A stretch of 64,000 bases of DNA from Marsupella aquatica (GCA_973895155.1 OZ316898.1:6497079-6561078), one strand, 5' to 3'. Shown: positions 11,264 through 63,519, counted from the first letter of the stretch. Notes: a model not told the origin generated them from the letters alone. Numbers and translations: made by a program.

Positions 11264-12241
11264 CTAGAAAGATAAGTTCAGCTGGTTTTTGGCAAATTCC
11301 TTGATTGCAGGATCGTTGAAGATGAAGTCAGAACTTGCCGCGAGAACCGCGTTTACGGTGAGTAGAACTACGGAGGAACCCAAAATCATGGCCACCACTA
11401 CCCCAGTCGTCCCCAAAACCTTTGAGAAAACTGGCCAATCTATCAATTTCGTCTCCTCAGTCACACCTCTCCAAAAATCGGTCGTGCTGGAGGGGTCCTG
11501 ATATCCCATTGTTGTTCTTTCCTTCCTTAGCTCGCTTATGGCGGTACCGATTTCGTCAATAGAATCTGGACTATCACTAGTGTTTTCATCCTGTTTTCTT
11601 TCTGAGACCTTCGATTCTGTACTGCCAGCCTCGCTAGCAAATGCCTCAGCAGCCAATCTATCGTCCTTCTCGATGTCCTCGTCCTCAACACCGACGGAAT
11701 TCGTGGTAGTCGACGGCTGTGGTGGAGACGAGGGAATGTTCTCTACTATCCGCTTCTCCTCCTTGCGGTCACCACCAGACGCTCTCATCGCCCTCACAAC
11801 GGTCAGAGCAGATCCTAACCCTGGTCGTCTTCTTCCTCGTCCTCCTGTCACCGAAACTCTACAGCCGATAGACAATCAAATGACTTCTACTTAGAATCCT
11901 TGTGTGATGTAAATTCCAATGCCAAGATATTCACAATCCTCACACCAAAATTAAGTCGCCACTGATTTCTTGCATTCCAAGCTTAGAAGAAACTTCAACA
12001 GGGTACACAATTTTCACATGGTAGTTGCTGAAATCCAAGTCGCAACAACGACATAACAGAGGATTTACCTGAGTCCCTTTCGGCAGGCCACAGTCACATT
12101 CGCATCGAGATTCGAGCACCCCAACGATGGGCAATGCACTGTGCTGCTGCTGCAGCTGCTGCTCAGCCCAGTTGCAGCTCTCCCCTGTGCCTCTACTGAG
12201 TACGAGCACACAGAACCCCACGCGAGACTGGCTGTTGCCAT
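11264..12241 (-). CDS. SECE1: Plastid preprotein translocase subunit SecE1; join(12241..12069, 11858..11264), 255 aa
   Basis: Ser/Ala-rich transit-peptide exon MATASLAWGSVCS..., phase-2 intron CAG|GTAAAT...CTGTAG|A, and a C-terminal SecE motif FWRGVTEETKLIDWPVFSKVLGTTGVVVAMILGSSVVLLTVN with one TM helix. Confidence 0.9.
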
Positions 12242-32100: not shown

Positions 32101-32129
32101 CATGTAGGCTTCTGGAGTGACATCTCTAG

Positions 32130-32427
32130 CCAGGTTTGGACTTGCTCGGCAAATAGAGGCTTTAGAGTCCGTCAACTGGCAACTCTTCACCCGGATCGTC
32201 CCAGCTGCCCGATCTTGACTTCCCGGCCCTTCGCGGTCCGGCCCGGCCATACCTCCCGGCCCCAGTCGGCTCACACCCTGCCCCGACCCCGGCCTGTCCC
32301 GGCCCAGCCCTGCACCCGGCCTGGGGAACAACAAGGAATATCCGACATTTGGGCCGATTTTCGCCCAGCAAATGACGAGTTTATGTGTCCGACAACTCAG
32401 CAAGTTGCCCATCCACTTCAAACCTGG
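32130..32427. mobile_element. Non-autonomous hAT element (MITE, 298 bp) related to the 52618-62470 transposon
   Basis: TIR CCAGGTTTG...CAAACCTGG with a perfect 8-bp TSD ATCTCTAG (32122-32129 and 32428-32435). The first about 70 bp and last about 100 bp align by eye with the ends of the large element. CCCGG-rich interior. Confidence 0.92.
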
Positions 32428-32884
32428 ATCTCTAGACATGATTCTAGGGCCCCACCATGTGGATGGAAAGAATGATAGATATGATCTATGTCAAATGATA
32501 ATTGTGCATATTTTTTGTCATTGTTTCTATTTACATTCAAAAAACAGGAATTCAGGCTCTACCCCTAAAGAAGTAGAACTAACACATTTGTCTTGTGCAA
32601 AAGCTGTACTGCCCTCACTCATAGAAATGAGGTGGTGCTCCACTTGAAAGTCTTAGAACCACCATCCTGACCGGTGGAGAACTCGGCCAATTTAGTTGTA
32701 TTGGAGTTTCACTCCAATGAAATCTTATCCTGTCTATAGTCTGACCTGCGGGGGTGCTCTATGACCATTGATCCACCTCATATTAGAGCTTCCCAACCAA
32801 TACAACTAACATCTTCTCTCAATAAAAATGTATTTTAATAGCTTTTATCTTGTGGGGAGTAAACATTCCCACTGTCGGTTCTTG

Positions 32885-35907: not shown

Positions 35908-37899
35908 GTGGATGGATGGTCAGCTCCAGCATGGGTTAAGGCAAGGGCGAATTTGATTACTCACAGCAGATTTCATTCTCATGCTAGTTATTCCACAAGA
36001 GATCGGTCTCAAGTCACTGCGAAAGGGAATGGCAGTAGGCATATGCATGATGCTGGTACCACGAGTGAAACAATTGCTGTTTTGAAAAATCGTCTACAGC
36101 GAGGCATTACTATAGACTCGTACACATATGTCGAAGTTCTGCAAATGTGCTTGCAACAGAAAGACCTTTCAGCAGCCAAGCAAATTCATGAATGCATCAT
36201 CGAGAGTGGAATGGATAAGAATCCATATGTGGCAATCACGCTCTTGAATGTGTATATAAAATGCGGAGGATTGTTAGATGCGCGTCGAGTATTTGACCAA
36301 CTTGAGAAAAAGAGTGTTGTTACTTGGAGCGCGATGATAGCAGGATATGCTAACAGTGATTGTGCTGATTCTGTACCGGAACTTTATAATCAAATGCGCC
36401 AAGAAGGCGTGCAGCCTAATGAGATCACATATCTGAGCATCCTGAAAGGATGTGCCAGCCCATTAGCTCTAACATGCGGGAAAGAAATCCATGAGCGTAT
36501 TCGACATGCCGGCTTTGAATCCGACGTGCGTGTAGGCACTGCCCTCCTACTGATGTACGCAAAATGTGGGTGCATCACCGAGGCAAGGATGGTTTTTGAA
36601 AAGTTGACCAATCGAAATCTCATTACATGGAATATTATGATTGGAGCATATGCAGAGCGTGGTGATGGTGTGGAAAGCACATCGACTGTTTCTACAAATG
36701 CGACGTGAAGGCTTCGAACCAGATGCATTTACTTATGTTAGTATTCTCAATGCATCTGCAAGTGAGGGTGCTTTGGAATGGGTGAAGGAAGTTCACGGCC
36801 ATGCTCGCAAAGCGGGACTGGATTCATATTTGCGTGTGGGTAGTGCACTGGTTCACATGTATGCACAGAGCGGCAGTATAGATGACGCCCGACTGGTTTT
36901 TGACAGAATGAGGAAACGCGACGTAGTCACATGGAATGTAATGATCGGTGCACTTGCAAAACACGGATGTGGGGATGAAGCATACAGACTGTTTCTTCAA
37001 ATGAGACGTGAAGGCTTCGAGCCAAATGCGATCACTTACGTGAGCATCCTGAATGCATCTGCAAGTGCGGGTTTGACAGAATGGGGAAACGCGATTAGTC
37101 ACATGGACTGTAATGATCGGTGGACTTGCACAACATGGATGTGGGCATGAAGCATATCGACTGTTTCTCCAAATGAGACGTGAAGGCTTCGCACCAAATG
37201 CAGTCACTTATGTGAGCATCCTGAGTGCATCTGCAAGTGAGGGGGCTTTGGAATGAATGGGGAAACGCGATGTAGTCACATGGGCTGTAATGATCGGCGG
37301 ACTTGCAACATGGATGTGGGGCTGAAGCCCTGGACCACTTCAGAAAAATGACCTTAGACGCTGTGAAGCCCAACGTGTATTCATTCGTGGCAGTGTTGTC
37401 AGCCTGTTGTCACGGAGGCCTTGTTGATGACGGTCGTAGAGTCTTTTCAGCTATGAGCACCATGATGCAAGACAGAGGTATTCGGAAGGAGCCAGGGCTT
37501 AGCTGGATTGAAGTTGATAAGAAGATCCATAAATTTGTTGTAGGGGATAGATCTCACCCAGAAGCGAGGGCGATATACACGGAACTCAATAAATTGATTG
37601 AAAATTTGAAGGCTGAAGGCTACGTTCCGGACACCAGACTTGTGTTGCACGACATCAATGAGAAGGATAAAGAACTAGCTCTTTGCTCTCATAGTGAGAA
37701 GTTGGCCATTGCTTACGGACTTATGCACATACCTCGGGGAAAACCAATTCGTATATGGAAGAACCTTCGGGTGTGTTCAGATTGCCATACCGCTACCAAG
37801 TTTATCTCTAAGGTGACGGGACGCGAGATTATAGCCAGGGACGCCAATCGCTTTCACCATTTTAAAGATGGCATATGTTCTTGTGGCGATTACTGGTGA
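35908..37899 (+). pseudogene. PLS-class PPR protein with a DYW deaminase domain (organellar C-to-U editing factor), disrupted by frameshifts and internal deletions
   Basis: P-L-S repeats (VVTWNVMIG...EAYRLFLQMRREGFEPDAFTYVSIL...VGSALVHMYAQSGSIDDARLVFDRM) are spread over three ORFs in shifting frames. PG box KEPGLSWIEV, HSEKLA, KNLRVCSDCH and terminal DYW* are intact. Frameshifts at about 36675, 37095 and 37305. Confidence 0.9.
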
Positions 37900-40609: not shown

Positions 40610-42772
40610 TCAAAACCTCTTATTCTCATATGAGACCAAACCATGCACGTTACCCTCTGCTTGTGCAGCAGGTGTGCGTATCTGCATCAAAGTCCACCGT
40701 CCAAGAAGTTGGTATGAAAGAATGCGGATATTAGCCCCAAAACACAGAATTCCAATCAATGCTCAGTGCTGGCAATCTTAGACCTCGACCTGCCAATTCG
40801 GAAAAACGGTCAAGAACATGCAGCCTGGTGCAAAATAGTGGCAAGGTAGAGAGATGCAGACCTCCATTCTAATTTCTCCAGACCTGAGCGCCTGATGAAC
40901 TTTTTGGACTGACTTTACCCCCATATCTTGGAACCCTTGCCTTACTGCCTGCATTGTGAAGGGAACCAGACGGAGTATAGAGCCTTTATCTGCAACCACA
41001 CCTGAAACTCCTTGTGCTATTTTCAGTTGTAGTATGTTTGCCAAGTAATGATCATCACTTTCTTCTGCCAAGTAATGATCATCTCTTCCTTTTGCTTGAG
41101 CCTCTAAGGAGCCCATGGCTCGGTAAGATTTCAGCTTACGCCCATCCTGCTCACACAAACGGAATAAAAACCTATGAACGTAATTCCTGTCATGAAGAAA
41201 GGTTACCAGTGTGCAACCTTTTCTACTAGCCTGTGACCAGAAAGTGAGGAAATGCTGACTGGCTAGTATCCCCAGACCAAACCCTCAGTAGCCTATACAT
41301 AGTACCTCGTAGAGTTTAAGATTGGTCAATTCTTCCAAGACAACCAGAGGCCAACAACCAAACTGGATCACAGCAAAGATAGAAACATGTCCCACCTGGA
41401 AGAAATAATCTCCAGGAGCCTCTTCAGTCCCAGCAAGAAAGTTCCCCATCATGACAGTCGACGCACCCAAAGTAAGAGCCTTGACAATGTGCCCTGAATT
41501 AGAAATTCCCCCGTCTGCAATGATAGGGACATCAAAAGTGCTTGCAAAACGAGCTGTTTGATACACTGCAGTTGCCTGAGGCATAGAAAACCACGAAAGG
41601 GAGATTATGTTCGACAGAGCTTTCCAATCTTTCTACATACAGGACTAGTCTCATCATGCTCAAGTAATGACTTCAGGACTTGACAGCAACGGGAAAAGAG
41701 GGGGAATCCAGACTGGAGTGAATTTTAATCAAGGGGTACATGAAGAATGTACCTGGCCACGGCCAACACCGCAAACTTCCTGAGTGGTGCAAATGGAGCC
41801 AGCACCCATACCGACTCTTAGCGCATCAGCCCCTGCCGCGATCAACTGGTACGCTTGCCTAGCAGTCACCACATTTCCACCGATCACATCGAGCTGTGGG
41901 TACCTCTTCTTAACGTAGGACAGCATATCTAGTTGGTATTGGGAGTTGCCCTGGGCGCTATCCAGGATGACAACGTTCACGCCAGCATCCACCAGAAGCT
42001 TGAGCCTCTCTTTGTCACTGTCCCTAGTTCCCACAGCCGCTCCAACGAGGAACTTCCCATCAGGTCCGAGCGAGGGGGCACGCATCCTTGGGTTTGAGAG
42101 CATGCGCTTTAGGTCTGTTCTGCACAGCACTTCCACCACCTCGCCGTGGTCGTTCACTAGAGGCAACGAACACTTCTTGCTACAACTCAGAATTTGAGCA
42201 GCGTCCAACAAAGTCGTGTCTGCTGGAGCTGTGACAAGGTCGGTGCTCATCACACCCCCGAGCTCCGTGCTTCTACGCACAACGCAATCTATATCACTGC
42301 TCGTGACAATGCCAACGAGCTTTGAACCCATGGTACCATCCTCTGTCACAAGAACAGATGAGAAACCCTTGGTACTCTTGATGACATCAATGTGGCTAAT
42401 TGTGTCACTGGGCCGCAAGCACACAGGCTCATACACGAATCCAACTCTCTGATTCTTAACCTTCTTGACGAGATTGGCCTGCTCTACCGGCGTGTTGTTG
42501 TAATGCACGAATCCAATTGCTCCCACGGTCGCCATCGCTGCTGCCATGGACGATCCTGTCACTGTGTCCATAGGGGACGAGATGCAGGGCGTCCTCAGAA
42601 CGATGTTTTTCGTCAATTTCGATGAGAGGTCAACGTCATCTGCTGGGAAGTCGATGAACCCCGGATGCATGATCACGTCGTCGTAAGTGTAACTATTTTC
42701 TCTCCCAAAAACCTCTATTGCTGTCCACCCATCGTGCTCGAATCCAGGGAAACCTCCCCCATTTTGGCCCAT
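40610..42772 (-). CDS. IMPDH: Inosine-5'-monophosphate dehydrogenase; join(42772..41753, 41575..41396, 41146..40862, 40681..40610)
   Basis: [17 protein letters not shown] pair, [20 protein letters not shown], catalytic loop [32 protein letters not shown] and C-terminal [19 protein letters not shown]. All introns are GT-AG, phase 0. Confidence 0.95.
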
Positions 42773-43321
42773 CTCTCCCACACTCTCTCAAAACAGAAGT
42801 GCTCCCTATTCTCAGAACTTTGAGACCTCTGATTATGAGGATTGCTGCTCTTCAGAAATTGGACACCTCTGATTGTGAGGATTGCTGTGGAGACGAGGGT
42901 TGTTGACCGCAGCAGCAATGTCGCAAGCCAGCAAACAAAATTCTCGAGTCAGTCAGGGTTTAAGTTTTAGCACTCCGGGGTCTTAAGTAGTGGATACAGA
43001 TTACGGGACGATCCAAATTCTTGAGTCAGTCAGGGTTTAGCGTTTGGTGCTCGGGCTCTTACAGTGGTGGATACAGATTACGTTACCCTGGGATATGGTC
43101 GGTTCGCGCAATAAAAAGTGTTGAAAATGTCAGTGTATGTTGGGTACAATGTATGAAACTTGAAATATTGACATATTAAGTTTCATTTAGAAGAGGTTCA
43201 CCCTTCGAAATGACCACAAATTGTCCAGAATGACGAAGAGTCTTATGGGCTAAAGTATTGCGTTCTCAAGGATCTATCTCTTTTTTCTTTCTGTAGCACT
43301 GGAGCCAATGGTGCCTTCATT

Positions 43322-51316: not shown

Positions 51317-52679
51317 AGCTTTGTGGTGGGGGCTCCTCTTGCGTGTGATGCATCGATGCTCGTGATTCAACTATGGCAGTGACTACTGTAGTATGGTGAT
51401 GTTGTTTCACAATTCATTTCAAAAACTCATTTATTACAACCCTTCGGTCACACTCTAAATGTTGCCCCTCTTCCTGGTTCTATTATTTAGGTGATAGCAT
51501 TTGCATGAGCTATGTACTTGATGGACTCCCAAAATAGAAAGTTACTTGACTACACACCTAGTGATCCAGGTGGTTGATAGACCTTAAATCTAAGTACAAA
51601 AGCCTCAGGGGTCTATTGAGCATACTCCCATCCACACCGTGTTCTATAATCAGTGTGGAACTGGAATAATCGGCCTGTCCTAGCTAGGAGACCAAATTCT
51701 CGTTTGCACCAGAGGTAGGTTTAGGGTTTAGGATTTAGATTTATTTTCTGTGGCAGGATTTTGGCCACTTTCCCCAAGCAGAATACTTCCAGGTCAAGCC
51801 CTCGCAAAAATATTTGATGTTGGCCAGACTGCCACATGTACGCATCTGGGGCAACATGGAATCTCCCTCCCTTGTGTCAGCCATCAATAGATGTAGGGAG
51901 AGACTGGCTATGTCAACTTTCAGGCCCGAAAGGCTCCCATCCGTGCCAGTCAGGTCCTACTGTTCCTCGAACAATTACTCCTGAAAATGATATATGACAG
52001 CCCACAACCATGGAATGGTGCAGATACACGAGAGTGACCTCTTATTTCTCTTAGAGCCAAGTTGTTTTTGTGCATAAGAATTTAGTGAACCTCGCTTAAG
52101 GATGGAAGTTTGTGCAAAATTGATTAACTGATGCAGTTTGAACTTGGAATCTCACTTGTTGCAATGAATATCGCCTGGGCTACATCTGTTGGGACATCAC
52201 CTGGGCTCCATCTATTGGGACAACTAATTTCAAGCAAACTCTACATTTATGTAGTTCTGCCCACAACAGGTGGCACTGGGATGTGAGCGTCTCTAAGTAA
52301 TGGGCACCATTGAATGGTGGGACACAATAGACCACACTAAGTAAGTTTTGAAGTAACTTTAGTCCAAATCATTTAAGTGGAAAATAATTATGGTTTTCAA
52401 CTCAAAAACAGCTGTGCAGTATAAGCTCCTTTGGACAGCATTTGGCACCCCAAAGGTCAAACAGTCAAACAGAATCGTCTCTCCTTGGAGCATGGTTCAC
52501 ACTATGCACCGTGTATTTAACTCTCCATTTGACTCTCCATTTGCCTGGGGAAGATCAAGGCCCACCCAAATGGCACAGAGTTCCCATGGTACCGTCCAAT
52601 GATTCACCCAACGCAACCCCGGTTTGGACTTGCCCGGCAAATAGACCGTTTTAAGGCCGTCAACCGGCAAGCCGACACC

Positions 52680-53245
52680 CGGTCTCTCCCGATCGTCATC
52701 ATCCGGTCCCGGCCCGAGTAAATCCGGTCCCAGCCTGAGTACTCCCGGTCCTCTTCCCTCCCGGCCCCGGACCCTAAACTTCCTCCGGCCCGGACCCTTC
52801 ACCCTCCCGGCCCGGACCCTAACGCCCCCCCCCCCCCCCCCGCCCCGGACCCTTCACCCTCCCGGCCCGGACCCTAACGCCCCCCCCCCCTGCCCCGGAC
52901 CCTTCACCCTCCCAGCCCGGACCCTAAAGCCCCCCCCCCCCCGCCCTGGACCCTACAGCCCTCCCGGCCCGGACCCTAAAGCCCTCCCCCCGGCCCGGAC
53001 CCAAAAGCCCCCCCCCCCCTCCCAGCCCTAAAGCCCCCCCCTCCGCCCCGGTCCCTAAAGCCCCCCCGGCCCGGCCCACCCCCGCCCGACCCGGGCCCAC
53101 CATGAGGGACCGGGTCGGGCGGGGCCGGGCCGGGCCGGGCTTTAGGGTTAGGTTGCGAGGAGGGCAGCCGCCAGGGGGGATCGGGCTCGGCCACCCGGGG
53201 TCGGCTCGCGAGGTGGGGTGGGGGGGATGAGACCGGGACCGGGGC
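52680..53245. repeat. Left subterminal GC-rich array (CCGGACCCT / CCCGGCCC units with C-runs, switching to G-rich at about 53105)
   Basis: Units of about 50-58 bp, CCGGACCCTTCACCCTCCCGGCCCGGACCCTAACG(C)n, repeated 3-4 times. Confidence 0.9.
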
Positions 53246-53911
53246 TATAAAGTGAGGAGGTCTCCTCACTTTCTCTCATTACTAACTTTTCAACTAAAGT
53301 TTGCTTGTTTTGTAGGAGAGACCTTTGGTAAGTTTTTCTTGCTTTTGCTTATGTTTTGCTTAGTTTTGAGTTTAGTTTACTAGTTTTTGAATTGTTTTGA
53401 GTCTTTTTTTTGCTATGCTTTGCCATGTATGACTTTAACATTTAGTTTTAATTTGGAGGGATATTAGTGTTCTCACGTATGCGCATGCTTGGAGCTTATG
53501 CTTGGCATGTGGTATTTCGTATGAGAAAACCTAATATTGCCTTAACAGTTTAGTGTGATTTGTGAATTGAGTGGAGTATTTTCTAGGATAGAGATTTTCA
53601 TGTACGCATGCTTGGAGTTTCCGCTCGGCATGTGGTACTCTGCATGGATATCTCGATTTCCACAACATGACATCTAAACTATAGGTTTCACATAGATTGG
53701 AATAGGAATGTAACAACTTGAAGGAAAAGACATCTTTTGTGCGCATGCTTGGAGTTTCGGCTTGGCATGTGGTATTTCACATAGTTGTCTTTCCCCTTCA
53801 TCGTTGTTACTTTCAAAGTACTAAACAAACGAATAAAAAATTGAAAAAATATTAAAATTTCATTGTTTGGGTATTATTGGTACCAACACAAAGTGTGAAA
53901 TGACATTTCAG
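53246..53911 (+). promoter_or_regulatory. Putative cargo promoter and 5' UTR intron: TATAAA at 53246, donor G|GTAAGT at 53328, acceptor TTTCAG| at 53911
   Basis: The TATA box lies immediately after the GC-rich array. Consensus splice sites flank a T-rich 584-bp stretch upstream of ATG 54025. Confidence 0.5.
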
Positions 53912-54024
53912 GATTGTTGATCCAGCTTTATTGTACTTGCATCATCCATACCCTCGGCAAGCAGCCAACACACTCCGTAAGCGCCTATTCTTTGTCCTAC
54001 AACTTGTTGTGGTTACTTGAGAAC

Positions 54025-55683
54025 ATGGCCGCTGCAAATGTGAGTGTAGAGTATATGAAACTTTTTGAGGCAATGAAGACCATGCTAAACGAGGAATATC
54101 AACCAGATCCTCATGCCCTCAATGCTCTACGGAATGCTCACAAAACCTTAGAAATTTGTAAACATGGCAAAACCTTAGGGAAACGGAAACATAGAGGAGG
54201 AGCAATTGGTGCTGCATTGAAACAGAGAAGGCAACATGTGTTAGTTGCGATTTGGAAAAAGATTCTATATCCCTACACTTTGCCAGCACAGTATGAGCAG
54301 GATGGCTTTGAGAGGAAGTATGCTATGCATGGAGCAGAGGGTTACAAAAATCTTTTAAATGACATGGGACGTTGCATGCATGAGACTGTGGAGAAAGAAG
54401 AGGACATGACCCGAGATGAAATTGCTGCCTTAATAGGTGATTTTGAGAAGCCGGGTGGATTTGTTGAACATTTGGCGTTGAACTTTGCGGTAAATCTTTG
54501 GGACAAGTTGGAATCCAATTTGGATGAGGCTGGGGTCGTCATGCTTGGAGTTCCTGGGCTATACACACATAGAAGAGATTTGCTAGCTAAATGGAGCAAA
54601 GAGTTAGCAATGGCCAAATCGGAGAGTAATGTCAAATATGCGAGCAAGGTCGTGCAGTTTGGAGAGATTGGCGTGGAGGTTGCAGATAGAGGAACGCGTC
54701 CATCACGAGTTGTTCCCATGGTCAGGAGTATTCATTTCTTGAGGAGGGAGCAAGTATCGAATTTGCATCGCATTGGAAGCGGCATCCAAGGACATGTGTT
54801 CATATGTCATATATTGGATTGTCCATTGATTCCTCGAAATGCAACACTGGTTGCAAAACGATTTAAGGATGGAGACCGACACAAGAGACGAACAGATGCC
54901 TTACAAGAAGTGCTCATGAGAGGTTTGAATCACAAAGGAATAATTGGGGCCTTGGCAATGACTATCGAAGATCCACCGAAACTTATCTATGACCATTACA
55001 ATGGAGAAGACTTGGGAAGCTTCATAGATAAGTGTGGGAAATGGAGTAAGAGCAAAGGGAAGACACAATCCACTTCTGAGGTTGATATGACATTCATATC
55101 CAAAAAGAAACTCTTTTTGGAACATCGTTTGGGGATTGCTATGGCTCTATTGGAGACCTTGCAATATTTGCATGCACACGACCGTTTCCATTGTGATCTT
55201 CATTTTGGGAACATCCTTCTTCACTTTGATCACGAGGATGATTTGGCAATTAGAGTTTATGTAGGAATATGTGATTTTGGGTTGTCCAAACACAAGTCAC
55301 AATGCACATTACCACAAAATCGAATGTGGCCCACCCCTATAGAGAAAGCAGTTGCGTATCAAAAACAATATCCACAATTGGCGCCTGAGCTAGTTCGTTC
55401 CGATCCAGCAGAGTACAGTCAAGCAACTGACATATATGCTTTGGGCAATATCTTTGAGACATTACTCACAGAAAATTGGGATGGAATGACCCCAATGACA
55501 TGATTTTTGAATAGGGGTTGGAATGCTAAAGAGCATGGCCCTAAATTGGATATTATCATACGTGACATGATGGCCATTGATGTCAAGAAAAGAATGGATT
55601 GTGTTCATTGGAGTTTGAGAATGATGAGGACATTCCAAGATTGTAGATTAGTTCAGCACAATAGTCCTTATCTAAGAGATTAG
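54025..55683 (+). pseudogene. Transposon-borne protein kinase (ePK fold) with an unknown N-terminal domain of about 245 aa; one premature TGA at 55501
   Basis: G-loop IGSGIQG, LVAKRF, helix-C Glu (ALQEV), HCDLHFGNIL, DFG, APE, DIYALG. After TGA 55501-55503 the frame continues with subdomain-XI-like LDIIIRDMMAIDVKKRMD to TAG 55681-55683. Confidence 0.88.
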
Positions 55684-55856
55684 AGATTTCATAGTTTTAT
55701 CGTGAATGACAATGATAGATGTCATGAACTATTATCTATTTAATCATGTCATATGAATTAAATGTATTACTCATTTTGCTTCATTGTATTTTGTTATCAA
55801 TTTTATCTTGAAGGGTGTATGGTGAATGAATGCTAAAAATGTTTTTGTTATTGTAG

Positions 55857-57785
55857 AATCTGCAAGGATGGGATTTGGAATCCGACGAGGAGGAAAAACC
55901 TAAAAAGATTCCATATTTATATTTGCAACCTGCTCAGGATTTACACCTTTGGTCTCAGGATCAATACACTGAAGAATATTCTCAACCCATAGACGAGGAC
56001 ATTGGAATGAGTAGCAATCATGCAGGGCAAAGCATAACCAAAATGAATGAGGACACCAAGGATGTTAAATGGAATATCACAATGCCAAATGTGAAACCTC
56101 CTCACAATGAATGGCTCATCAACGCCAAAGAATTGGAGATATTGATGCCACGTGTGGAGTTCCAAAAATGGATGAAAATCATTTTTGATGATGAAAATTT
56201 ATGGGCCACAAGGTCTTGGATGCAAGAGAAGTACACAATGTCCAAGGTAACACATGTGGAAATTGGCAAGCATTGGTAGCAAAGATTTCAAGAGTATGCT
56301 CCAAAGAAAGCGCAAGGCAAAAAAAGCTCGGTTTATCCTCCTTTTCTCCGACTCCTAATTGCTGAATTTATTCTCAAGTGGAAGGTGGATTACCGTTGGG
56401 AAACAGAAGAGGGCAAGATGATTCACTCTGTACATCAGTCTGTCCTGGACATTGCAGGTTTCAAGAACAACAAAAATACTACAAAAGATATATCGAGTCA
56501 AGCAACCAACAAAGGGTCAAAAAAAAAGATACATGATGTGCAAGACATTCATGCACATCAGAAAGATAAGCTGACTGCACTAGAACGACTCTTCACTAAA
56601 TCTGAAAGTTTCAGCGCACCAAAACATGTGGACAAAACATCAAACATTGCAGCATCTACAAGTAACAATTTACCAGGAAAATTCACTGATGTTTTGGATC
56701 CAAAGAAAGAATCATTGAGCATGGAGATTGTGTGCAAAAGTTTGAGCACAGAGATTGGTCATTTGATCGAGAATAATCTCCGCACAAAGTTTTGTCTTGA
56801 CCTTTGTGAAGCTGGCAGCATTGACTACTACAAGTCAAAGTTGCAAGATAATATTTTGAAGATGAAAGCAATGGAAAAAATGCCCATTCAAAGTGTGACT
56901 ACTTCGGAGGTGAAGGAATACAAGGTGCAACTGTATGACAAGATGGAGGAGATCGCAAAGCTCAACAAACAACTTGCCCAAAAGGATGGTCAATGTAGTC
57001 AAATGAAACAAGTTCAAGAGGCAGATAGAGTCATTGAGGATTTGAAGAATCAGGTTGCATCACAAGAGGTGATCATAAGCAATCTGCAAGAGGAGATCGA
57101 GCAAATGAACACTGCTGAGGTGGATGGGCAGTCAGACAAGGAAAAATCAAGATGCAAGAACCACAATTATATGAACTTGCAAATGATTGATCCTACGGGA
57201 GAATCTCATTTTTTTCCGGATGTGGAGGAGGATCCAGAAGATGTAGAGAAATTTTTTGACAAGTGGAAGACCGATGAAAGTATGGCCCAATTTGTTCGAG
57301 AAAAGGATGGAAGATGTACTTGGTGCTTGTATCCATGGGGTCCTGAATCTGTTTCCATTTTGGGAACATGCGGTCACTTATGGCATCATGCTTGCTTGTT
57401 TCGGTGGATGAAGAAGAGCCGAAAATGTTGGTGTCGAAAACCATTTCATGAACGAGAGTATGAGCAACGAGGTTTGTTGAAACAAATGCCACCAATGGAG
57501 ACACAGCAAGACACTGAAGACATGACTCAAGAGAGTATTGCAATGGCACAGATCGATTCAAGGCCCATTGACAACTTCACAGTTAATGAATACAACTTGT
57601 CAGATGGTGACTTTGACAATTTGCTATTCAATGGTAGATTCCAACAGTGGAAGGAATATGCCATGGCCAATCGACCAACAATAGATGAGCAAAACATGCA
57701 ACGATCTATTCGTCGCCATCGTCGTCGTCAGCAACTGGCAGAGGTGAAAGCAGAAGCGCAAGACAATGACAACCCAAATGAGTAG
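55857..57785 (+). pseudogene. Transposon-borne coiled-coil + RING-H2-like protein; one premature TAG at 56277
   Basis: ORFs 55875-56279 and 56385-57785 are in the same frame and separated by a single TAG. Heptad-rich segment (YKVQLYDKMEEIAKLNKQLAQ...IEDLKNQV...LQEEIEQM) followed by C-x2-C-x14-C-x-H-x2-H-x2-C-x10-C-x-C at 57315-57434. Confidence 0.82.
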
Positions 57786-57897
57786 ATTGCACACACAATG
57801 TTTAGTATAACATATTTTATTGCATAGGACATGCACAATCCGGCATAGTATATCATAGTTTGTCGTATAGTACTAGCATGTAATACCTAAACAGATA

Positions 57898-60800
57898 TCA
57901 AGGTTGTGACGAAAAGTGTCTTGTGTTATTGTTCTCATTTTCTTGCAAGTGTCGATCAAATTGAAATTGTCTTGTCATCCATTGGATCGGATCTGCGCTA
58001 TGATATTCTTGAAATGCCCCAACACGGGCATGTATGCTTGATGTGTATGGATTTGTCATGTTCTGTCTTTCATACATATTTTGTGTTGGAGAAGCATGTT
58101 GTCCCCACTGTGCATCATCAGGTTGCGCAAACAAAGTTGATGTTGTTCTCTCAGGACAGAGCTCCGATGCAGCACCTCGTTGTTGAAATAAGTACGAAGT
58201 ACTTGCTTGGACATCATTTTGTAGATTCAATGTTGGGTATGTGAATGATGGGTTTGGTTGGGAAGGCACTACAAAGTTTGCATCAAATGAGTAGTCCTCG
58301 TCATCCTGAATTTGAGACTCATCGATTGTAGGGAACATCATTAAATCCATTTCATCTTCCCATTCTCCGACATCACTTATTTCAGTATCTGGTGGAATAC
58401 GAGTCAACATGTCACTATGAGTGTGTAATGATAATCCTTGCAAAGCCTCATCTGCGTCATCAATTGTATCAAAATCCTCCACATCATCCTCTCCAAGAGC
58501 CGCACATGTAACACCATGTTGTTCAGTGTGACATTCTTCTATGGAAGTAGGCCTCGGGCCATCATTTGTTGCTGTTCTTTCATCATATCGTCTATACATA
58601 GACGTATGAGGATTTCTCACCTTCGTGAGCCCTTTTTGCACCCTCGAATTTGTGAATACAAAAACCAAGTCTTTTGCTCGATCATTGGTCAACCTATTAC
58701 GGCTTTTTGAATGGATATAGCCGTACGAACTCCAATTTCATTTGCATGAAGATGCACACATTTGTTGATGCATGATTCTTCTCGCCATCAATCTTAGCTC
58801 CGCGTAATCAGCTCCATACAAATGCCACCACTCTCCTGGACTTAATTTCCCAATATTCGATTGTGCTCCTCTAATTGCAACCGATGAATTTGGCAATTTT
58901 TTTTAGCCTCAAATGCCTGCATTTGGATGTCAGAAATAAGTGTCGTCACATCTCGATCATGGTTGATTCCTGCCTTCACCTTGTGTTCTGCATATCTATG
59001 AACGTAATCATTGAAGCCTCTATACAGTTCTGCATCTCCTGCCACATCTTCATCTTCATCGAAGAAAAATTGAGGATTCAGATATGCTGCTGCTAACATG
59101 AAATCAGTAGTAAGTGATTTTCGTTGATCCATATACACTTTCATTATCTTTGGTTTTAAGTAATCTGTTACTAATGTACAACCCTCCATGCTCGCCTCCA
59201 GTTTAGCTATTCCTTTTTTCAAGCTCCAATATAGCCAAGGAGACTGTGGTGAAACTCCATCGAATTCTCGCAACATCTTCACCAACGGCAGAAAAAAAGC
59301 AACTGTAGATTTTACTTGAGCCCAAAATGTATCTTGTTGTATCCACGATTTAAGTTCGTCTGCCTTTCCCCTCGTCATATGCCCCTGTGACTTTGGTCGA
59401 ACTGGCAGGCGATCACGATTGGATTGCCACTTATCATAAATGACCATTTGTTGTAAAGCTCCTCTTAGCTCCAATGCTCTCTGCGCCATTAAAAAATTTG
59501 TTGCAAATCTCGTTGCATTTGGATTTAACAACTTCCTGTCACCAGATTTCCTCACAAATATTGCAGACAACTTTTGTGATGATGTAACTGCTTTAACTAT
59601 CCATCTCAAGTGCTTAAAAATCATTTTGAATGGATTTTTTTTCCGCTCATCTAGCACAACATTCTTGTGGCCACACATGTCTTCTAGCAACAAATTAAAA
59701 ACGTGGGCAGCACACCAACTCCATGTCACATGCAGATATTTTTTCATGACTATCTCTTCACCTGCTACACGATTTGCAGGCGCCCCATCGGTAACAATTT
59801 GTATGATGTGATCGGCGCCAATGTCATCTATGTATTTTAACCACATGTCACCAAGATACTTCCCATCTTTCTTGTCGGCTTGTGCAGCGTTCCAACTATC
59901 CAAAAAGAAATCTCCTTTTGAACTCAACAACATGACATTCATCAAAGGTTCCCTTCGGATATTTTCCCATCCATCGGATGAAAGGGAATATCCAAAAGGT
60001 TTTGCCTCCTTCATTGTTTTTGTCATGTCCTTTGTAAGATCAACTCTAGCCTCCTCCAATAATTTCATTCTCAAATTTTTCATACTCGGAAGAGAATATC
60101 CATTTACAATCCCTTTCAAGGTTTCTGTGACTGCTTCACGGAAGAAACACCAAGATACTTCCCATCTTTCTTGTCGGCTTGTGCAGCGTTCCAACTATCC
60201 AAAAAGAAATCTCCTTTTGAACTCAACAACATGACATTCATCAAAGGTTCCCTTCGGATATTTTCCCATCCATCGGATGAAAGGGAATATCCAAAAGGTT
60301 TTGCCTCCTTCATTGTTTTTGTCATGTCCTTTGTAAGATCAACTCTAGCCTCCTCCAATAATTTCATTCTCAAATTTTGCATACCCGGAAGAGAATATCC
60401 ATTTACAATCCCTTTCAAGGTTTCTGTGACTGCTTCACGGAAGAAAGGATTCTCCGACACATTGAACGGAATACCACTTGAATAAAAAGCTTTGGCCCAC
60501 AGCTTATCCAAATGAGCTCTATTTGGAATTTGATAAACATCCATGATTGGGTTTGCAAAATTTGATGCTCTACTTCGATGACTCATATTTCCATCCTCAT
60601 CGAGGTCAACAAAATTTGAGTCTCGAATTGATGCTTGCGAATTGGAAGATGGGTTATATGACCTACGACCTCTCATGGATAACAAAACATGACTTCCATC
60701 ACTTCGTTTGTACTTTATGGATGGGTCAACCTTTATGACATTGTACATTCTATTGATGTCATCTAAGTCAACAACTCCATACAAGCCTGTGCAAGGTGGC

Positions 60801-61054
60801 GCATCTCCTTTGTGTATGTTTCCCATCAAATGTGCTTTTGCTCGTGTTGCATGACGCGTTGTATATTTCTTACAAAATTTGCATCTTCGATATATACGAT
60901 TAATATCATTACACGCTGATGGCGTATCACATCGTTCAAAATATTTCCACACTGGGGAAAATTTTGCACTACGATCTCGATTGTGATTTCCACTGTGCCT
61001 AACAGGAGTAGAATGAGCTGATGAGTTGCCCGACTCATCTTCTTCGGAAGACAT
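57898..61054 (-). pseudogene. hAT transposase (BED finger, DUF659-type RNase H-like core, C-terminal dimerisation domain), disrupted
   Basis: SPVWKYF...CKFCKK...AKAHL; AFYSSGIPFNVSENPFF; SLSSDGWENIRREPLMN; QIVTDGAPAN; CAAHVFNLLLEDM; NATRFATNF; AAYLNPQF; PGEWWHLYG; CASSCK*NWSSY...RNRLTNDRAKDLVFV. Removing the 299-bp duplication and adding 1 nt at the T8 run (58897-58904) gives one 953-codon frame with a single internal stop (58738-58740). Confidence 0.95.
59849..60446. repeat. Tandem duplication 2 x 299 bp inside the transposase (frameshifting)
   Basis: Units start at 59849 and 60148. Two substitutions seen (LPSMKN vs LPGMQN). Confidence 0.95.
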
Positions 61055-61714
61055 GATCGAAAACAAGAACTTTACACACAAAGTGTCTTTTTATACGTCA
61101 CTAAACATAGTCACTTAATAAAAATTGAATGATTATTTGTTAGTCTTTTGAAATAACAACAATAAAACGAGAAAAAAAAACTACTGTGAAATATCACACG
61201 TCGAGTCAAACTCCAAACATGCGCACAGCGGTTCTCTTTTGTTTTCTGGTTGTTAACATTCCTATCTGACGTATGTGATATCTATAATTTAATGAGCATT
61301 TGTCGATATAGTGAAAACATATGAGACAATTAGTGATAATCATGTAAAATATCACATGTCAAGCTTTAGCTCCAAACATGCGTACATGAATGTCAACATT
61401 GTCGAAATTTGTTTCACGATACCCACAAGTACCACTAAATTGTTAAGGGATAAGAAGAAAATTATTATGTGGATTACCACATGCCGAGTAAAACCTCCAA
61501 GCACGCGCGCACAAAAGTCTTTTCTATCTCTTTACATAGAGTGCTCTACTTTTAGTGAAGTGTGTCTAATGAGAAAAAACTCAAAGTTTTATACAATTTA
61601 GAATGAAAAAATGTTCTATATTTAGCGGGGTTGAAATACTAGATAGGCGAGAAATCGTCACAACCCCAAATTAGCAGATATGGCTTATCTCAATTGAGTT
61701 TATCCATAACTCTA

Positions 61715-62370
61715 AAACCCGGGCTTATCTTCCCTTAACCCAGGCCGGGCCTCCCTCCTCCCTGCTCCAACCCCTCCCTTCACCCGGGCCGGGCCTCCCT
61801 CCTCCCCCCCCCCCCGGGCCTCCCTCCACCCTGGCCGGGCCTCCTTCCCCCCCCCACCCGGGCCTCCCTCCACCCGGGCCGGCCCTCTTTCCTCCCCCCA
61901 CCCGGCCCTCGTCCGCCCCCTCCCCGGGCCCCCCTCCACCGGGCCGGGCCTCCCTCCTCCCTGCTCCCACCCCTCCCTTCACCCGGGCCGGGCCTCCCCC
62001 CACTCGGGCCTCCTCCCCCCCGGGCCTCCCTCCACCCGGGCCGGCCTTCCTCCCTCCCCCCACCCGGGCCTCGTCCTCCTCCCCACCCGGTCTCCTCCCC
62101 CCCCACCCGGGCCCCCCTCCACCAGGGCCGGGCCTCCTCCCTCCCCCGCCCCCCCCCCCACCCGGGCCCCCCTCCACCCGGGCCGGGCCTCCTCCCTCCC
62201 CCCACCCGGGCCTTCCTTCACCCGGGCCGGGCCGGGATGTAAAGCCGGGGCGTAAAGCTGGGGCCGGGGCCGGGGCCGGGTGACAAGAGGTAGGGGGGGG
62301 CCGGGCCGGGTCCGGGAAGAGGCCGGGAGGAGTTCGGGCCGGGCCGGGAGAAGTTCGGGCCGAGCCGGGG
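61715..62370. repeat. Right subterminal GC-rich array (CCCGGGCCGGGCCTCCCTCC units, switching to G-rich at about 62225)
   Basis: Dense repeats of CACCCGGGCC(GGG)CCTCC. The strand skew mirrors the left array. Confidence 0.9.
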
Positions 62371-63519
62371 AATAATGACGAATATGCGTCAAATGAGAAC
62401 ATTTCAGGCCGGCAAATGCCGAGTTTACGTGCCCGGCAACTCGGCAAGTTGCCCGTCACATCAAACCGGGAACGCAACCTTCTGTTAATTCCAGTTTTGC
62501 CATGCCCGTTTATGTGACTCTGATCGAGATGGGACGATCGGTGCTGTCCTTGCAGTTTGGGGCTGGGTGGGGGCTGCTGCTGCACACCTCAAACCCACCA
62601 GTTCTGGCTTGGGGGAGGCACCTTCTGGTGAGCCTGGAGCTCGGGTTTGAAATTGGCACAGGCTGGTGGGGGTCAAAAAAGATCAACGGCAAGCACCTCT
62701 TGCTAAGGACATTGTCGTGCAAACATTCCCCTGGACGGTTGGGGATGCTCTTACTGTATATACAATCCAGCCCAAATCGGTCGAACAGTTAACAGAATCT
62801 TTCTTGGGCTGTAGTATGCAATCCCACCCAAATTAGGCCATGATCGATCACATACAACCCAGGTTTTGGACCGAACTTACACTGATGTAAGGGCAGTCCC
62901 AACAAGGCCAGGGCAGAAGGGAACCCTCCTTTGCTATTTTGATACAAAGCATCATTTGCACGTTTTGATTCCTCTTCCCATTTTCCCTGTCACCCTAGAC
63001 TCTCACGGGGGACACTTCAATTCATCAACCGTCTCCTCCGTCAACCCCCAGCCATTTTCGCCTCACATCCTTTCTACCTCTCTGTCCAGATGAACAGACA
63101 ACACCATTGTCTATCTAAAGCCCTTCCCTTGCTCGGGAAATGTTGGATTAAACTAATTGTTTTCCTGGCCAGTTGTGAATTTCGAATGCAGAAAACACTG
63201 TCCAGGCTGTGCTGGGGATTATGGAAAATACAGCAAACATACGAACAGCAAGTTCACACTGTCCTTTTAAGTCAAAGTAAACCTTGTTTCGACTCTTCTA
63301 CGCGCACCTCGCTGCTTTGCAAACAAATGTGCTTTGTACCTACCGGACCTAATGCTCTCTCACAGTCAGGTCATTATCGGGATAACTCAAGATGGGGGTC
63401 ATTGTAAGCCATGTCTTGATTAAAGAAAACCAGCTGCCTTTGATTGACATGATTTAGACTGACAGTGACAAGCAACAAGACCGCGAACTTTTGGAGTTGA
63501 ACTCAATCTTGTTGGATTG

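Follow-up and report, generated by a model that had tools for sequence, protein, structure and literature searches.

The locus analyzed here, in the genome of Marsupella aquatica, raises the question of why a hAT transposon should contain, in addition to its transposase gene, genes for a predicted protein kinase and a predicted RING-type protein, and whether these are maintained parts of the element, remnants of host genes or an unrelated insertion. An earlier note on this DNA stated that hAT elements normally encode a transposase alone, which holds as a rule but has published exceptions (PMC12730594, PMC6710886, PMC12957317). A kinase and ubiquitin-ligase-like cargo is unusual for hAT transposons.

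An inactive hAT insertion in Marsupella aquatica

The window (the entire 64,000-nucleotide stretch of M. aquatica DNA that was analyzed) contains, at positions 52618-62470 (9,853 bp), a single insertion of a hAT-superfamily DNA transposon that is now inactive. The boundaries can be read directly from the target-site duplication (TSD) and the terminal inverted repeats (TIRs): two identical 8-bp copies of AACGCAAC flank the element (52610-52617 and 62471-62478), and the left TIR, CCCGGTTTG (52618-52626, plus strand), which is followed by a conserved subterminal block (TTGCCCGGCAAAT), has its exact reverse complement at 62462-62470 (minus strand). The perfect TSD and the TIRs described earlier are both present, but the TIRs are perfect over just 9 bp; past this point the ends are patchily alike, and the right end includes an additional 19-nt block. 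The TIR 9-mer occurs three times in the window, against 0.25 occurrences expected; the third site, at 21134, lacks subterminal similarity and is attributed to chance. A single pattern finds homologous ends in two Calypogeia fissa scaffolds (L002 and L003) and in a MITE-like element in the window (32130-32427, 298 bp, plus strand; TSD ATCTCTAG at 32122-32129 and 32428-32435), which is a deletion derivative of this family. Next to the TIRs are G+C-rich short repeats, at 52690-53240 (CCCGG-rich, ~22-50 bp period, GC 0.72) and at 61730-62370 (GC 0.75), which are likely candidates for transposase-binding sites.

Inside the element, a kinase gene (54025-55683, plus strand, delineated by frame continuity) is followed by a coiled-coil/RING-H2-like gene (about 55860-57785, plus strand) and a convergent BED/DUF659/hATC transposase gene (61054-57898, minus strand). 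The coordinates bear out the 112-bp distance previously given between the stop codons of the latter two genes (57783-57785 and 57898-57900, with the spacer at 57786-57897). The three long reading frames reported before can also be traced, but none is intact in the window copy. The kinase gene is interrupted by one nonsense codon (TGA, 55501-55503). The RING gene is interrupted by TAG at 56277-56279 and has probably lost its start, with CTG at position 55860 where the relatives have the initiator ATG. The transposase gene is damaged in three places. A 299-bp tandem duplication (59849-60147 and 60148-60446), whose two copies differ only at positions 60080 and 60086, shifts the frame; a further shift, of 1 nt, lies in an A8 run near 58,900; and the putative catalytic-Glu motif, which here reads K-stop, contains a nonsense codon (58738-58740). 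None of the three proteins can still be made from this copy.

The transposase comprises a putative BED finger, a DUF659 core of predicted RNase-H-like type, the hATC dimerisation domain and a long acidic C-terminal tail that extends for ~230 aa after hATC and is conserved in the family. The window sequence matches the Pfam DUF659 profile with 104 bits. In the broken window pieces, zf-BED reaches 17.2 bits against the cutoff of 20.6, and Dimer_Tnp_hAT (PF05699) reaches 19.7 bits against 21.4; a C..C...H..H-type block is conserved in the BED region of the relatives, and in two intact relatives, P0017 and P0019, PF05699 scores 36.9-41.7 bits, well over the same cutoff, which L003 and L002 exceed too. 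The blocks SDGWEN, TDGAPAN, CAAH and CERNWS are conserved among the relatives; we take the first, second and fourth of these to be the positions of the hAT catalytic D, D and E. A comparison of the family transposase profile with the PDB detects the Hermes transposase alone, with a weak match over the hATC motif (E about 0.09); of the three presumed catalytic blocks, only the one with the E could be aligned to Hermes. Three independent insertions have perfect 8-bp TSDs, each different (that of the window element, that of the MITE, and GCGGATTG in L003), which is evidence of mobility, and the TIRs are short (perfect over 9 bp in the window element; 10 bp in L003) and accompanied by subterminal blocks that are conserved. 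On the strength of the 8-bp TSD, the short TIRs and PF05699, the element belongs to the hAT superfamily.

The kinase and RING genes

The predicted kinase consists of a family-specific helical N-terminal domain and a TKL/TK-like kinase domain. The window sequence scores 59.4 bits with Pfam Pkinase (cutoff 31.7) and also matches PK_Tyr_Ser-Thr, and the characteristic motifs, namely GxGxxG (G-loop), VAK, HxD..N, DFG and APE, are kept across the members. An AlphaFold2 model (pLDDT 79) identifies Roco4, LIMK1, Fyn and JAK2 as the best Foldseek matches, with the probability of 1.0, and the best PDB relatives detected by profile reach E values of about 1e-7 at most, too distant to place the protein in any named kinase family. 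The protein is a member of the eukaryotic protein kinase superfamily, of the TKL/TK-like type, and represents a very isolated, highly divergent lineage. A profile search among 1.84 billion representatives yields just 17 proteins at E<1e-30 and 64 at E<1e-10; 20 of the matches were looked up, and the named ones all come from C. fissa. All matches to the N-terminal domain in this set are family members, and the search found no close cellular parent of the cargo.

The RING protein ends with a RING-H2-like finger, for which zf-RING_2 gives 21.6-25.7 bits in the five members tested, all under the cutoff of 27.3. The ligand pattern C-x2-C-x13-C-x-H-x2-H-x2-C-x10-C-x-C is conserved across members, with six ligands at canonical spacing and a final pair C-x-C rather than C-x2-C. 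The AlphaFold model of this protein (pLDDT 44) is unusable. Both basic patches pointed out in the initial reading of the locus are present: GKRKHR is semi-conserved in the kinase, and RRHRRR is conserved at the C-terminus of the RING.

Other copies and selection on the three genes

The kinase and RING genes recur outside this copy, to which the earlier note had allowed that they might be confined. The order kinase, RING gene, convergent transposase is found in three C. fissa scaffolds (L002, L003 and L011), one of which, L003, has its own TSD and the TIR CCAGGTTTGA, so that further three-gene copies, which it had been proposed to seek, do exist, one of them with a distinct 8-bp TSD. The three-gene order is also present, whole or in part, in three environmental/SRA contigs. 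All three genes follow in the same order in L001; L004 and L009 have the kinase and then the RING gene, and these contigs stop before any transposase. Adjoining kinase and RING reading frames are intact in L001 (636 and 624 aa) and L004 (540 and >645 aa), and partly so in L009. The intact frames sit on short contigs, and none of the elements recovered is both complete and fully intact; the window copy and the C. fissa copies examined are all pseudogenes. So far, the family is known from the M. aquatica genome, the leafy liverwort C. fissa and a few environmental/SRA contigs. In L007, the 2.7 kb beyond the stop of an intact related transposase (62% identity) contain neither a kinase nor a RING gene; some members of the wider clade may thus lack the cargo.

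A ~45-nt motif with the core GCATGCTTGGAGTTT is present in three copies upstream of the kinase ATG (53475-53795, plus strand) and in two to three copies upstream of the transposase ATG (61170-61520, minus strand). Because the motif precedes both genes and has the same orientation relative to each, these two outer genes are probably turned on together. A motif scan detects it in the window, L002, L003, L004 and L008.

In the C. fissa copies, ~4 kb of extra inverted-repeat-rich DNA separates the RING and transposase genes, and in L011 this DNA includes a nested TIR-like end. Nesting is therefore known in the family, which lends some weight to the possibility that the cargo is a separate element inside the hAT, or consists of host genes located between two hAT ends. 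However, a repeat scan of the window found no TIR/TSD pair that encloses the cargo alone, the RING and transposase stops are close together, the same gene order is enclosed by the TIR/TSD pairs of independent insertions in two genomes, and the promoter regions of the kinase and the transposase are linked by their common upstream motif. A composite or nested origin of the locus, which had been considered from the outset, is therefore extremely improbable.

Estimates of dN/dS, obtained by the NG86 method with bootstrap, argue for long-term maintenance of the cargo. Between the window and C. fissa copies, the ratio is 0.17 (0.09-0.24) for the kinase, 0.29 (0.21-0.37) for the RING gene and 0.19-0.21 for the transposase, and no bootstrap upper bound exceeds 0.37. 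These values are rough, since most between-genome pairs are saturated at synonymous sites (dS above 1). The intact L001, compared with L004, gives 0.21 and 0.23, and the ratio nears 1 for L002/L011 alone, a nearly identical pair, as expected from decay after insertion. Thus, the kinase and RING genes have co-diverged with the transposase under purifying selection of about equal strength. Given that the two genes lie within the TIRs, have co-diverged with the transposase and are under similar purifying selection, they form a maintained accessory module and are not captured debris, in accord with the original proposal. Comparison of the copies shows that this hAT family carries a fixed two-gene module, with a predicted kinase and a predicted RING protein, that is read from the left end towards the interior, has been kept long-term and moves with the element.

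Passive capture, of the Pack-type or transduplication kind, would imply that the host kinase and RING genes were acquired once and have been carried along functionless. Capture of host genes by hATs does occur, as in the case of histone H3 in a ~9.5-kb DUF659 hAT of Dothideomycetes (PMC6710886), and the pseudogene state of all copies in both assembled genomes is what this scenario would lead one to expect. The scenario is nevertheless already disfavoured and very improbable: both genes are complete and free of introns, and L001 and L004 have them intact; their order is kept across copies with saturated synonymous sites at omega of 0.17-0.29; the catalytic and zinc-binding residues are conserved; and no close cellular homologue is detectable in the 1.84 billion representatives. 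The cargo thus does not fit the Pack-type picture, in which a piece or retro-copy of a recognisable host gene evolves neutrally. All the checks proposed in the earlier note that were run favour its interpretation, and a dead hAT insertion with a maintained kinase-RING module, together with the architecture and mechanism proposed for it, is overall the best explanation of the locus, in which we have considerable confidence.

Possible functions and comparison with known elements

As for the role of the module, the kinase and the RING protein might act as a pair that phosphorylates and then ubiquitinates a nuclear host protein. Most plausibly, the target would silence or restrict the element, and its modification would allow transcription and movement of the element to continue; we put this forward tentatively. 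If true, this would be a case of transposon counter-defence by phosphorylation-coupled ubiquitination. The favoured functional models are VANC of the VANDAL (Mutator) elements, which relieves silencing of its own element (PMC10398659), and AACRNL, encoded inside non-autonomous teleost hATs, which modifies EZH2 post-translationally and promotes its degradation, relieving silencing (PMC12957317). The similarity would be one of logic alone, since VANC is a DNA-binding protein and AACRNL is an ADP-ribosyltransferase, both unrelated to the kinase and RING proteins.

Alternatively, the module could act on the element's own machinery, for example, by phosphorylating and ubiquitinating the transposase, and could thereby control when transposition takes place, keep dosage low (autoregulation) or direct the repair of excision gaps. 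The conserved acidic tail after hATC, which is absent from typical hAT transposases, the upstream motifs common to the kinase and transposase genes, suggestive of co-expression, and the similar selection on all three genes are all compatible with this possibility. However, in L005, L006 and L010, a paralogous kinase without the family transposase adjoins a different gene, DUF6729; therefore, the kinase is not bound exclusively to the hAT family, which fits a target that is not transposase-specific. Action on the element's own machinery thus appears rather unlikely, even if by no means negligible. The broader hypothesis that the kinase and RING-ligase system of this plant transposon lineage tags a silencing or restriction factor of the host for degradation and, in addition, that the kinase with its promoter is a mobile module common to the hAT family and a second, unclassified type of element built around a ~1,250-aa DUF6729 protein is doubtful but worth considering.

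Mobile defence or addiction genes often move with varied partners, and the association of the kinase with another partner gene, along with selection on what is predicted to be a two-gene enzymatic pair, could also indicate a selfish addiction (toxin/antidote) pair or cargo beneficial to the host (e.g., in immunity), maintained for reasons unrelated to transposition efficiency. This is improbable, given that the window and C. fissa copies examined have all decayed, which is unexpected for a beneficial or addictive locus, and that the present data give no sign of toxicity. Action of the pair on a nuclear silencing or restriction factor is the reading that we prefer.

Full-text literature searches found no description of a hAT family with a kinase-RING architecture, in agreement with the earlier note; the new element here is the maintained two-gene module, as hATs with extra genes are already known. 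The hAT7 families of rust fungi stably carry a TET/JBP gene beside the transposase (Kojima 2025, PMC12730594); this gene, for which a role against epigenetic silencing has been suggested, is common to several transposon superfamilies (PMC12730594). The resemblance extends to an extra enzyme gene and, in the present case, to a kinase that likewise also adjoins a different large gene, but the rust families are fungal, have a 7-bp TSD and contain a single dioxygenase gene in the transposase orientation, with no kinase or RING gene. The IS3EU transposons of rusts (PMC12730594) have a kinase gene opposite in orientation to the transposase but belong to another superfamily, with a 6-bp TSD, an alpha-kinase instead of the eukaryotic protein kinase fold, and no RING partner. 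The histone-H3 hAT of Pseudocercospora and Cercospora (PMC6710886) is similar in size (~9.5 kb), in its DUF659 transposase and 8-bp TSD, and in having an extra coding sequence; its cargo, however, is retro-copied from an obvious host parent and inactivated in all copies, whereas no parent can be detected for the cargo described here, on which selection is purifying.

The present family shares with Ac, Tam3 and Hermes/hobo the 8-bp TSD, the short TIRs and hATC, and its transposase is predicted to resemble theirs in the BED finger and the RNase-H-like core with an insertion domain. Those elements encode one protein, whereas here two more conserved genes lie on the opposite strand; the present elements are also long (~10-14 kb) and have the acidic tail. 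The present family begins with CCNGGTTTG, as against the CAGGG/TAGGG-type start of Ac-type ends.

Boundaries, genes and lesions of the element

The boundaries proposed in the earlier note, a duplicated target site of 8 bp (TSD) and terminal inverted repeats (TIRs), can be read directly. The TSD AACGCAAC is present on both flanks (52610-52617 and 62471-62478), and between them the TIR CCCGGTTTG opens the element at 52618-52626, while the exact reverse complement of this 9-mer closes it at 62462-62470; only these 9 bp of the TIR are perfect. Beyond them, the two ends have only blocks in common, the right one containing an additional block of 19 nt, and both are adjoined by G+C-rich short repeats (500-650 bp, GC 0.72-0.75). 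A pattern built from the ends identifies a MITE-like deletion derivative of 298 bp at 32130-32427 (32122-32435 with the TSD), whose ends match those of the window element, down to the additional 19 nt on the right, and which has its own perfect 8-bp TSD, ATCTCTAG. In a Calypogeia fissa scaffold with all three genes (L003), the ends are CCAGGTTTGA... on the left and ...TCAAACCTGG on the right, and the perfect 8-bp TSD GCGGATTG differs from that of the window, so that the kinase, RING and transposase genes all lie within a 13.6-kb element of another genome. Thus, the window element, the MITE and L003, each with a different perfect TSD, represent three independent insertions. The left end of another C. 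fissa scaffold, L002, is homologous to the family end. The earlier note had also considered that the cargo (the kinase and RING-type genes) might be a separately nested element; such a nesting artefact is a less likely reading, and no inverted-repeat/TSD pair brackets the cargo alone in the window element. CpG depletion in the element is the same as in the remainder of the window. The 9-mer CCCGGTTTG occurs three times in the window, with 0.25 occurrences expected; the one at 21134 was rejected as a further family end and attributed to chance as it lacks subterminal similarity.

All three genes of the window copy are damaged. The kinase frame (54025-55683, plus strand) contains one TGA (55501-55503), and the coiled-coil/RING frame (~55860-57785, plus strand) contains one TAG (56277-56279) and has CTG where the relatives carry ATG. 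The transposase gene (61054-57898, minus strand) has three lesions: a 299-bp tandem duplication (59849-60147 and 60148-60446) that doubles the start of the DUF659 domain, shifts the frame and, with 2 mismatches, is very recent; a frameshift of 1 nt, located within a run of A8 near 58,900; and a TGA at 58738-58740, where the CERNWS block of the relatives has become CK-stop-NWS. This copy is therefore dead. The cargo, claimed earlier to be no more decayed than the transposase, is if anything less damaged, with one nonsense codon in each gene, apart from the altered RING start, versus three lesions.

The distance between the convergent RING and transposase stops was measured as 112 bp (57786-57897), the same as reported before. 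With so short a spacer, overlap of the two 3' UTRs is unavoidable, and the sole AATAAA-like signal there is on the minus strand. One might speculate that overlapping transcripts give rise to siRNAs directed against the element.

The window also contains a gene for a PPR-E+-DYW protein of the RNA-editing type (35908-37899), which is split into three overlapping or adjacent frames (35908-36708, 36641-37150 and 37303-37899) and is either a pseudogene or frameshifted, and, on the minus strand, an IMP dehydrogenase exon with CBS domains (41729-42781) and an ORF with a SecE/Sec61-gamma-like C-terminus (11264-11875; 21.9 bits, just under the threshold of 22.7). The latter two are ordinary host genes near the element, and the PPR gene together with the IMP dehydrogenase exon identifies the window as land-plant nuclear DNA. 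PPR genes of the DYW type are not known from marchantiid liverworts, so that the presence of this gene would be in keeping with a land plant outside the marchantiids.

Recurrence and conservation of the three-gene unit

Protein searches, in which stop-free pieces of the broken frames served as queries, yielded few relatives of the kinase and RING pieces, and the contigs of the matches were then examined. In the contig L001 (Logan SRR18067545, 5.4 kb), the kinase (636 aa) and the RING-type protein (624 aa) are both intact, and the C-terminus of a convergent transposase is also encoded. The contig L004 (ENA ERZ27311014) begins in G+C-rich subterminal sequence and encodes an intact 540-aa kinase followed by a RING-type gene that is open to the contig end. 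A scan of metagenomes with the RING alignment identified a sole, short locus, L009 (JGI), in which the C-terminus of the kinase precedes the N-terminus of the RING protein. Three C. fissa scaffolds contain the kinase gene, the RING gene and the convergent transposase gene, the last separated by an inverted-repeat-rich spacer of ~4 kb (L003:12000-16100, L002:13200-17300, L011:12810-17170), compared with 112 bp in the window; it is partly common to the copies and holds nested repeats. In L011, the spacer contains an additional insertion of ~600 bp with a hAT-like end; this internal TIR-like end was rejected as the end of a cargo-less element, given that its flanks lack a TSD and that it lies within the L011-specific insertion. 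Protein models matching the kinase or the transposase are found on about a dozen C. fissa scaffolds. Thus, the cargo, which the earlier note took for maintained accessory genes, recurs in L001, L002, L003, L004 and L011, and in part in L009, with intact ORFs in L001 and L004, so that the kinase and RING-like genes form a module that this hAT family has maintained.

The dN/dS ratio (omega) was estimated from codon pairs taken from tblastn alignments of stop-free segments (Nei-Gojobori, NG86; 1,000 bootstraps). Between the window and the C. fissa copies, omega is 0.17 for the kinase (95% interval 0.09-0.24), 0.29 for RING (0.21-0.37) and 0.19-0.21 for the transposase (0.16-0.26), so that the cargo values, proposed earlier as a check, are close to that of the transposase; these between-genome estimates are rough, with dS >1 in most such pairs, and since saturation makes dS too small, they are overestimates, if anything. 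The intact L001 and L004 genes give 0.21 for the kinase and 0.23 for RING. Among the C. fissa copies (dS 0.2-0.38), the omega values of all three genes are 0.31-0.46; for the kinase of the nearly identical pair L002/L011, the value is 0.64 (0.39-1.20), as neutral decay of copies once inserted would predict. Identity ranks alike for the three genes, window-C. fissa pairs being closer than window-L001 pairs, which is consistent with co-divergence of kinase, RING and transposase as one unit. Passive capture of the cargo is less likely than a function of the module, and a profile search of 1.84 billion representatives, with 20 matches looked up, yielded no candidate host parent for the kinase, which the earlier note had allowed might be closest to host genes.

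The kinase and transposase genes also have a ~45-nt upstream motif in common, with the core GCATGCTTGGAGTTT and a CATGC element. Three copies lie at 53475-53795, 230-550 bp upstream of the kinase ATG, and, upstream of the transposase ATG, two to three copies at 61170-61520; relative to their respective genes, both sets are oriented alike. The motif occupies the same places in L002, L003, L004 and L008. That it is conserved at a distance at which synonymous sites are saturated suggests a regulatory element common to both genes, i.e., a candidate promoter element.

Predicted proteins and their possible function

Comparison with Pfam assigns the window element DUF659 (104 bits) and, below the respective cutoffs, zf-BED (17.2 bits versus 20.6) and, for a 54-aa transposase piece, Dimer_Tnp_hAT (19.7 bits versus 21.4); two intact transposase relatives, P0017 (801 aa) and P0019 (807 aa), clearly exceed the DUF659 and Dimer_Tnp_hAT thresholds. 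A PDB search with P0019 as a single sequence gave no match, so that a profile was required; with the family profile, Hermes transposases are the only match, a weak one across the hATC block. Together, these results identify the window element as a hAT, in line with its structural features. The same hAT clade includes an intact transposase of 807 aa, with 62% identity in the core, within L007:673-5868. The 2.7 kb downstream of its stop contain no kinase or RING homologue, long ORF or G+C-rich subterminal repeats, the locus has no recognisable ends, and it may be a cargo-less or domesticated relative.

The window kinase matches Pfam Pkinase with 59 bits, and the kinase alignment retains the glycine loop, the VAK lysine, the alpha-C glutamate and the HxD...N, DFG and APE motifs, with a conserved domain of ~190-230 residues N-terminal to the kinase domain, before a disordered linker. 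Accordingly, in an AlphaFold2 model (pLDDT 79) the N-terminal domain is all-helical and is followed by a disordered linker and then by a canonical kinase. The closest Foldseek neighbours are Roco4, LIMK1, Fyn and JAK2 (13-20% identity). A single-sequence PDB search with the kinase query P0002 gave no match, and here too a profile was required. Only 17 proteins among the 1.84 billion representatives match the kinase profile with E<1e-30, and 64 with E<1e-10; all matches to the N-terminal domain are family members, ordinary kinases start at about E 1e-23, and the named proteins among the 20 looked up all come from C. fissa. A scan of viral contigs with the kinase alignment gave no match, Foldseek against viral models retrieved generic kinases only, and NCBIfam gave no meaningful match. 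The kinase clade is very divergent and compact, with a private N-terminal domain. For annotation, this means that gene models labelled 'serine/threonine kinase' or 'unnamed protein' in liverwort assemblies can belong to transposons.

The RING-type protein has a conserved N-terminal region with no recognised fold and long predicted helices (low-confidence AlphaFold2 model, pLDDT 44). It retains the finger C-x2-C-x13-C-x-H-x2-H-x2-C-x10-C-x-C, followed by a conserved REYEQRGLL block and a C-terminal RRHRRR-type tail, the basic patch pointed out before. All members fall just under the Pfam RING threshold (24.5 bits versus 27.3 for the window finger), and the protein is therefore called RING-H2-like and a putative, not proven, ligase.

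These features are compatible with a mechanism in which the outer genes, kinase and transposase, would be co-regulated, and the kinase and the RING protein, with their conserved basic patches, would act in the nucleus as a phosphorylation-coupled ubiquitination pair with predicted activities. The target that we tentatively prefer is a host silencing or restriction factor. VANC in VANDAL elements provides a model for this logic (PMC10398659), and the hAT-borne enzyme AACRNL modifies EZH2 and promotes its degradation (PMC12957317). The main alternative, that the module acts on the transposase of the element itself, is rather doubtful, a point in its favour being a conserved acidic tail of ~230 aa on the family transposases, which is unusual. 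A role as an addiction or host-benefit cargo is less likely than action on a host factor. Host manipulation of this kind is directly testable, since Marchantia and other liverworts can be transformed and their silencing machinery is simple.

Relation to other transposons

Conserved accessory enzymes have mainly been described in Mutator, CACTA and Harbinger elements and, recently, in fungal elements with TET/JBP. The generalisation of the earlier note, that hAT elements normally encode only a transposase, holds for Ac, Tam3, hobo and Hermes, from which the present family is set apart by its length, its ends and two additional conserved genes; it does not hold for the TET/JBP-positive hAT7 of rust fungi (PMC12730594), for a DUF659 hAT of ~9.5 kb with a dead histone H3 retro-copy (PMC6710886) or for the non-autonomous hATs in which AACRNL is located (PMC12957317). 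In IS3EU elements, an alpha-kinase gene lies opposite the transposase (PMC12730594). These published elements, none of them of plant origin, have neither a eukaryotic-type kinase nor a RING protein. Full-text literature searches retrieved no description of a hAT family with a kinase and RING module, in agreement with the earlier note, which knew of none. A hAT lineage that keeps these two genes under purifying selection across genomes points to a new route of host manipulation by transposons, in which a protein of the host or of the element is post-translationally modified and probably degraded.

At three further loci (L005:500-4480, L006:9600-16600 and L010:9280-21300), a kinase paralogue with ~50% identity and the same upstream motif region precedes, on the same strand, a DUF6729 gene (PF20499), which replaces the RING gene. 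The DUF6729 gene encodes ~1,250 aa with the blocks CxxC...CxnC, DHHH, CCDD and DNHH; neither Pfam nor PDB identifies the remainder, and no mention of DUF6729 was found in the literature. Near these paralogues there is neither a hAT transposase nor a hAT end, and a search for such ends upstream of the kinase gene, made in L006 and L010, gave none. These units may represent a second, unclassified element type with the same kinase module, and the kinase may thus be exchanged between element types, which hints at exchange of enzyme genes between plant transposon types, as for TET/JBP genes in fungi.
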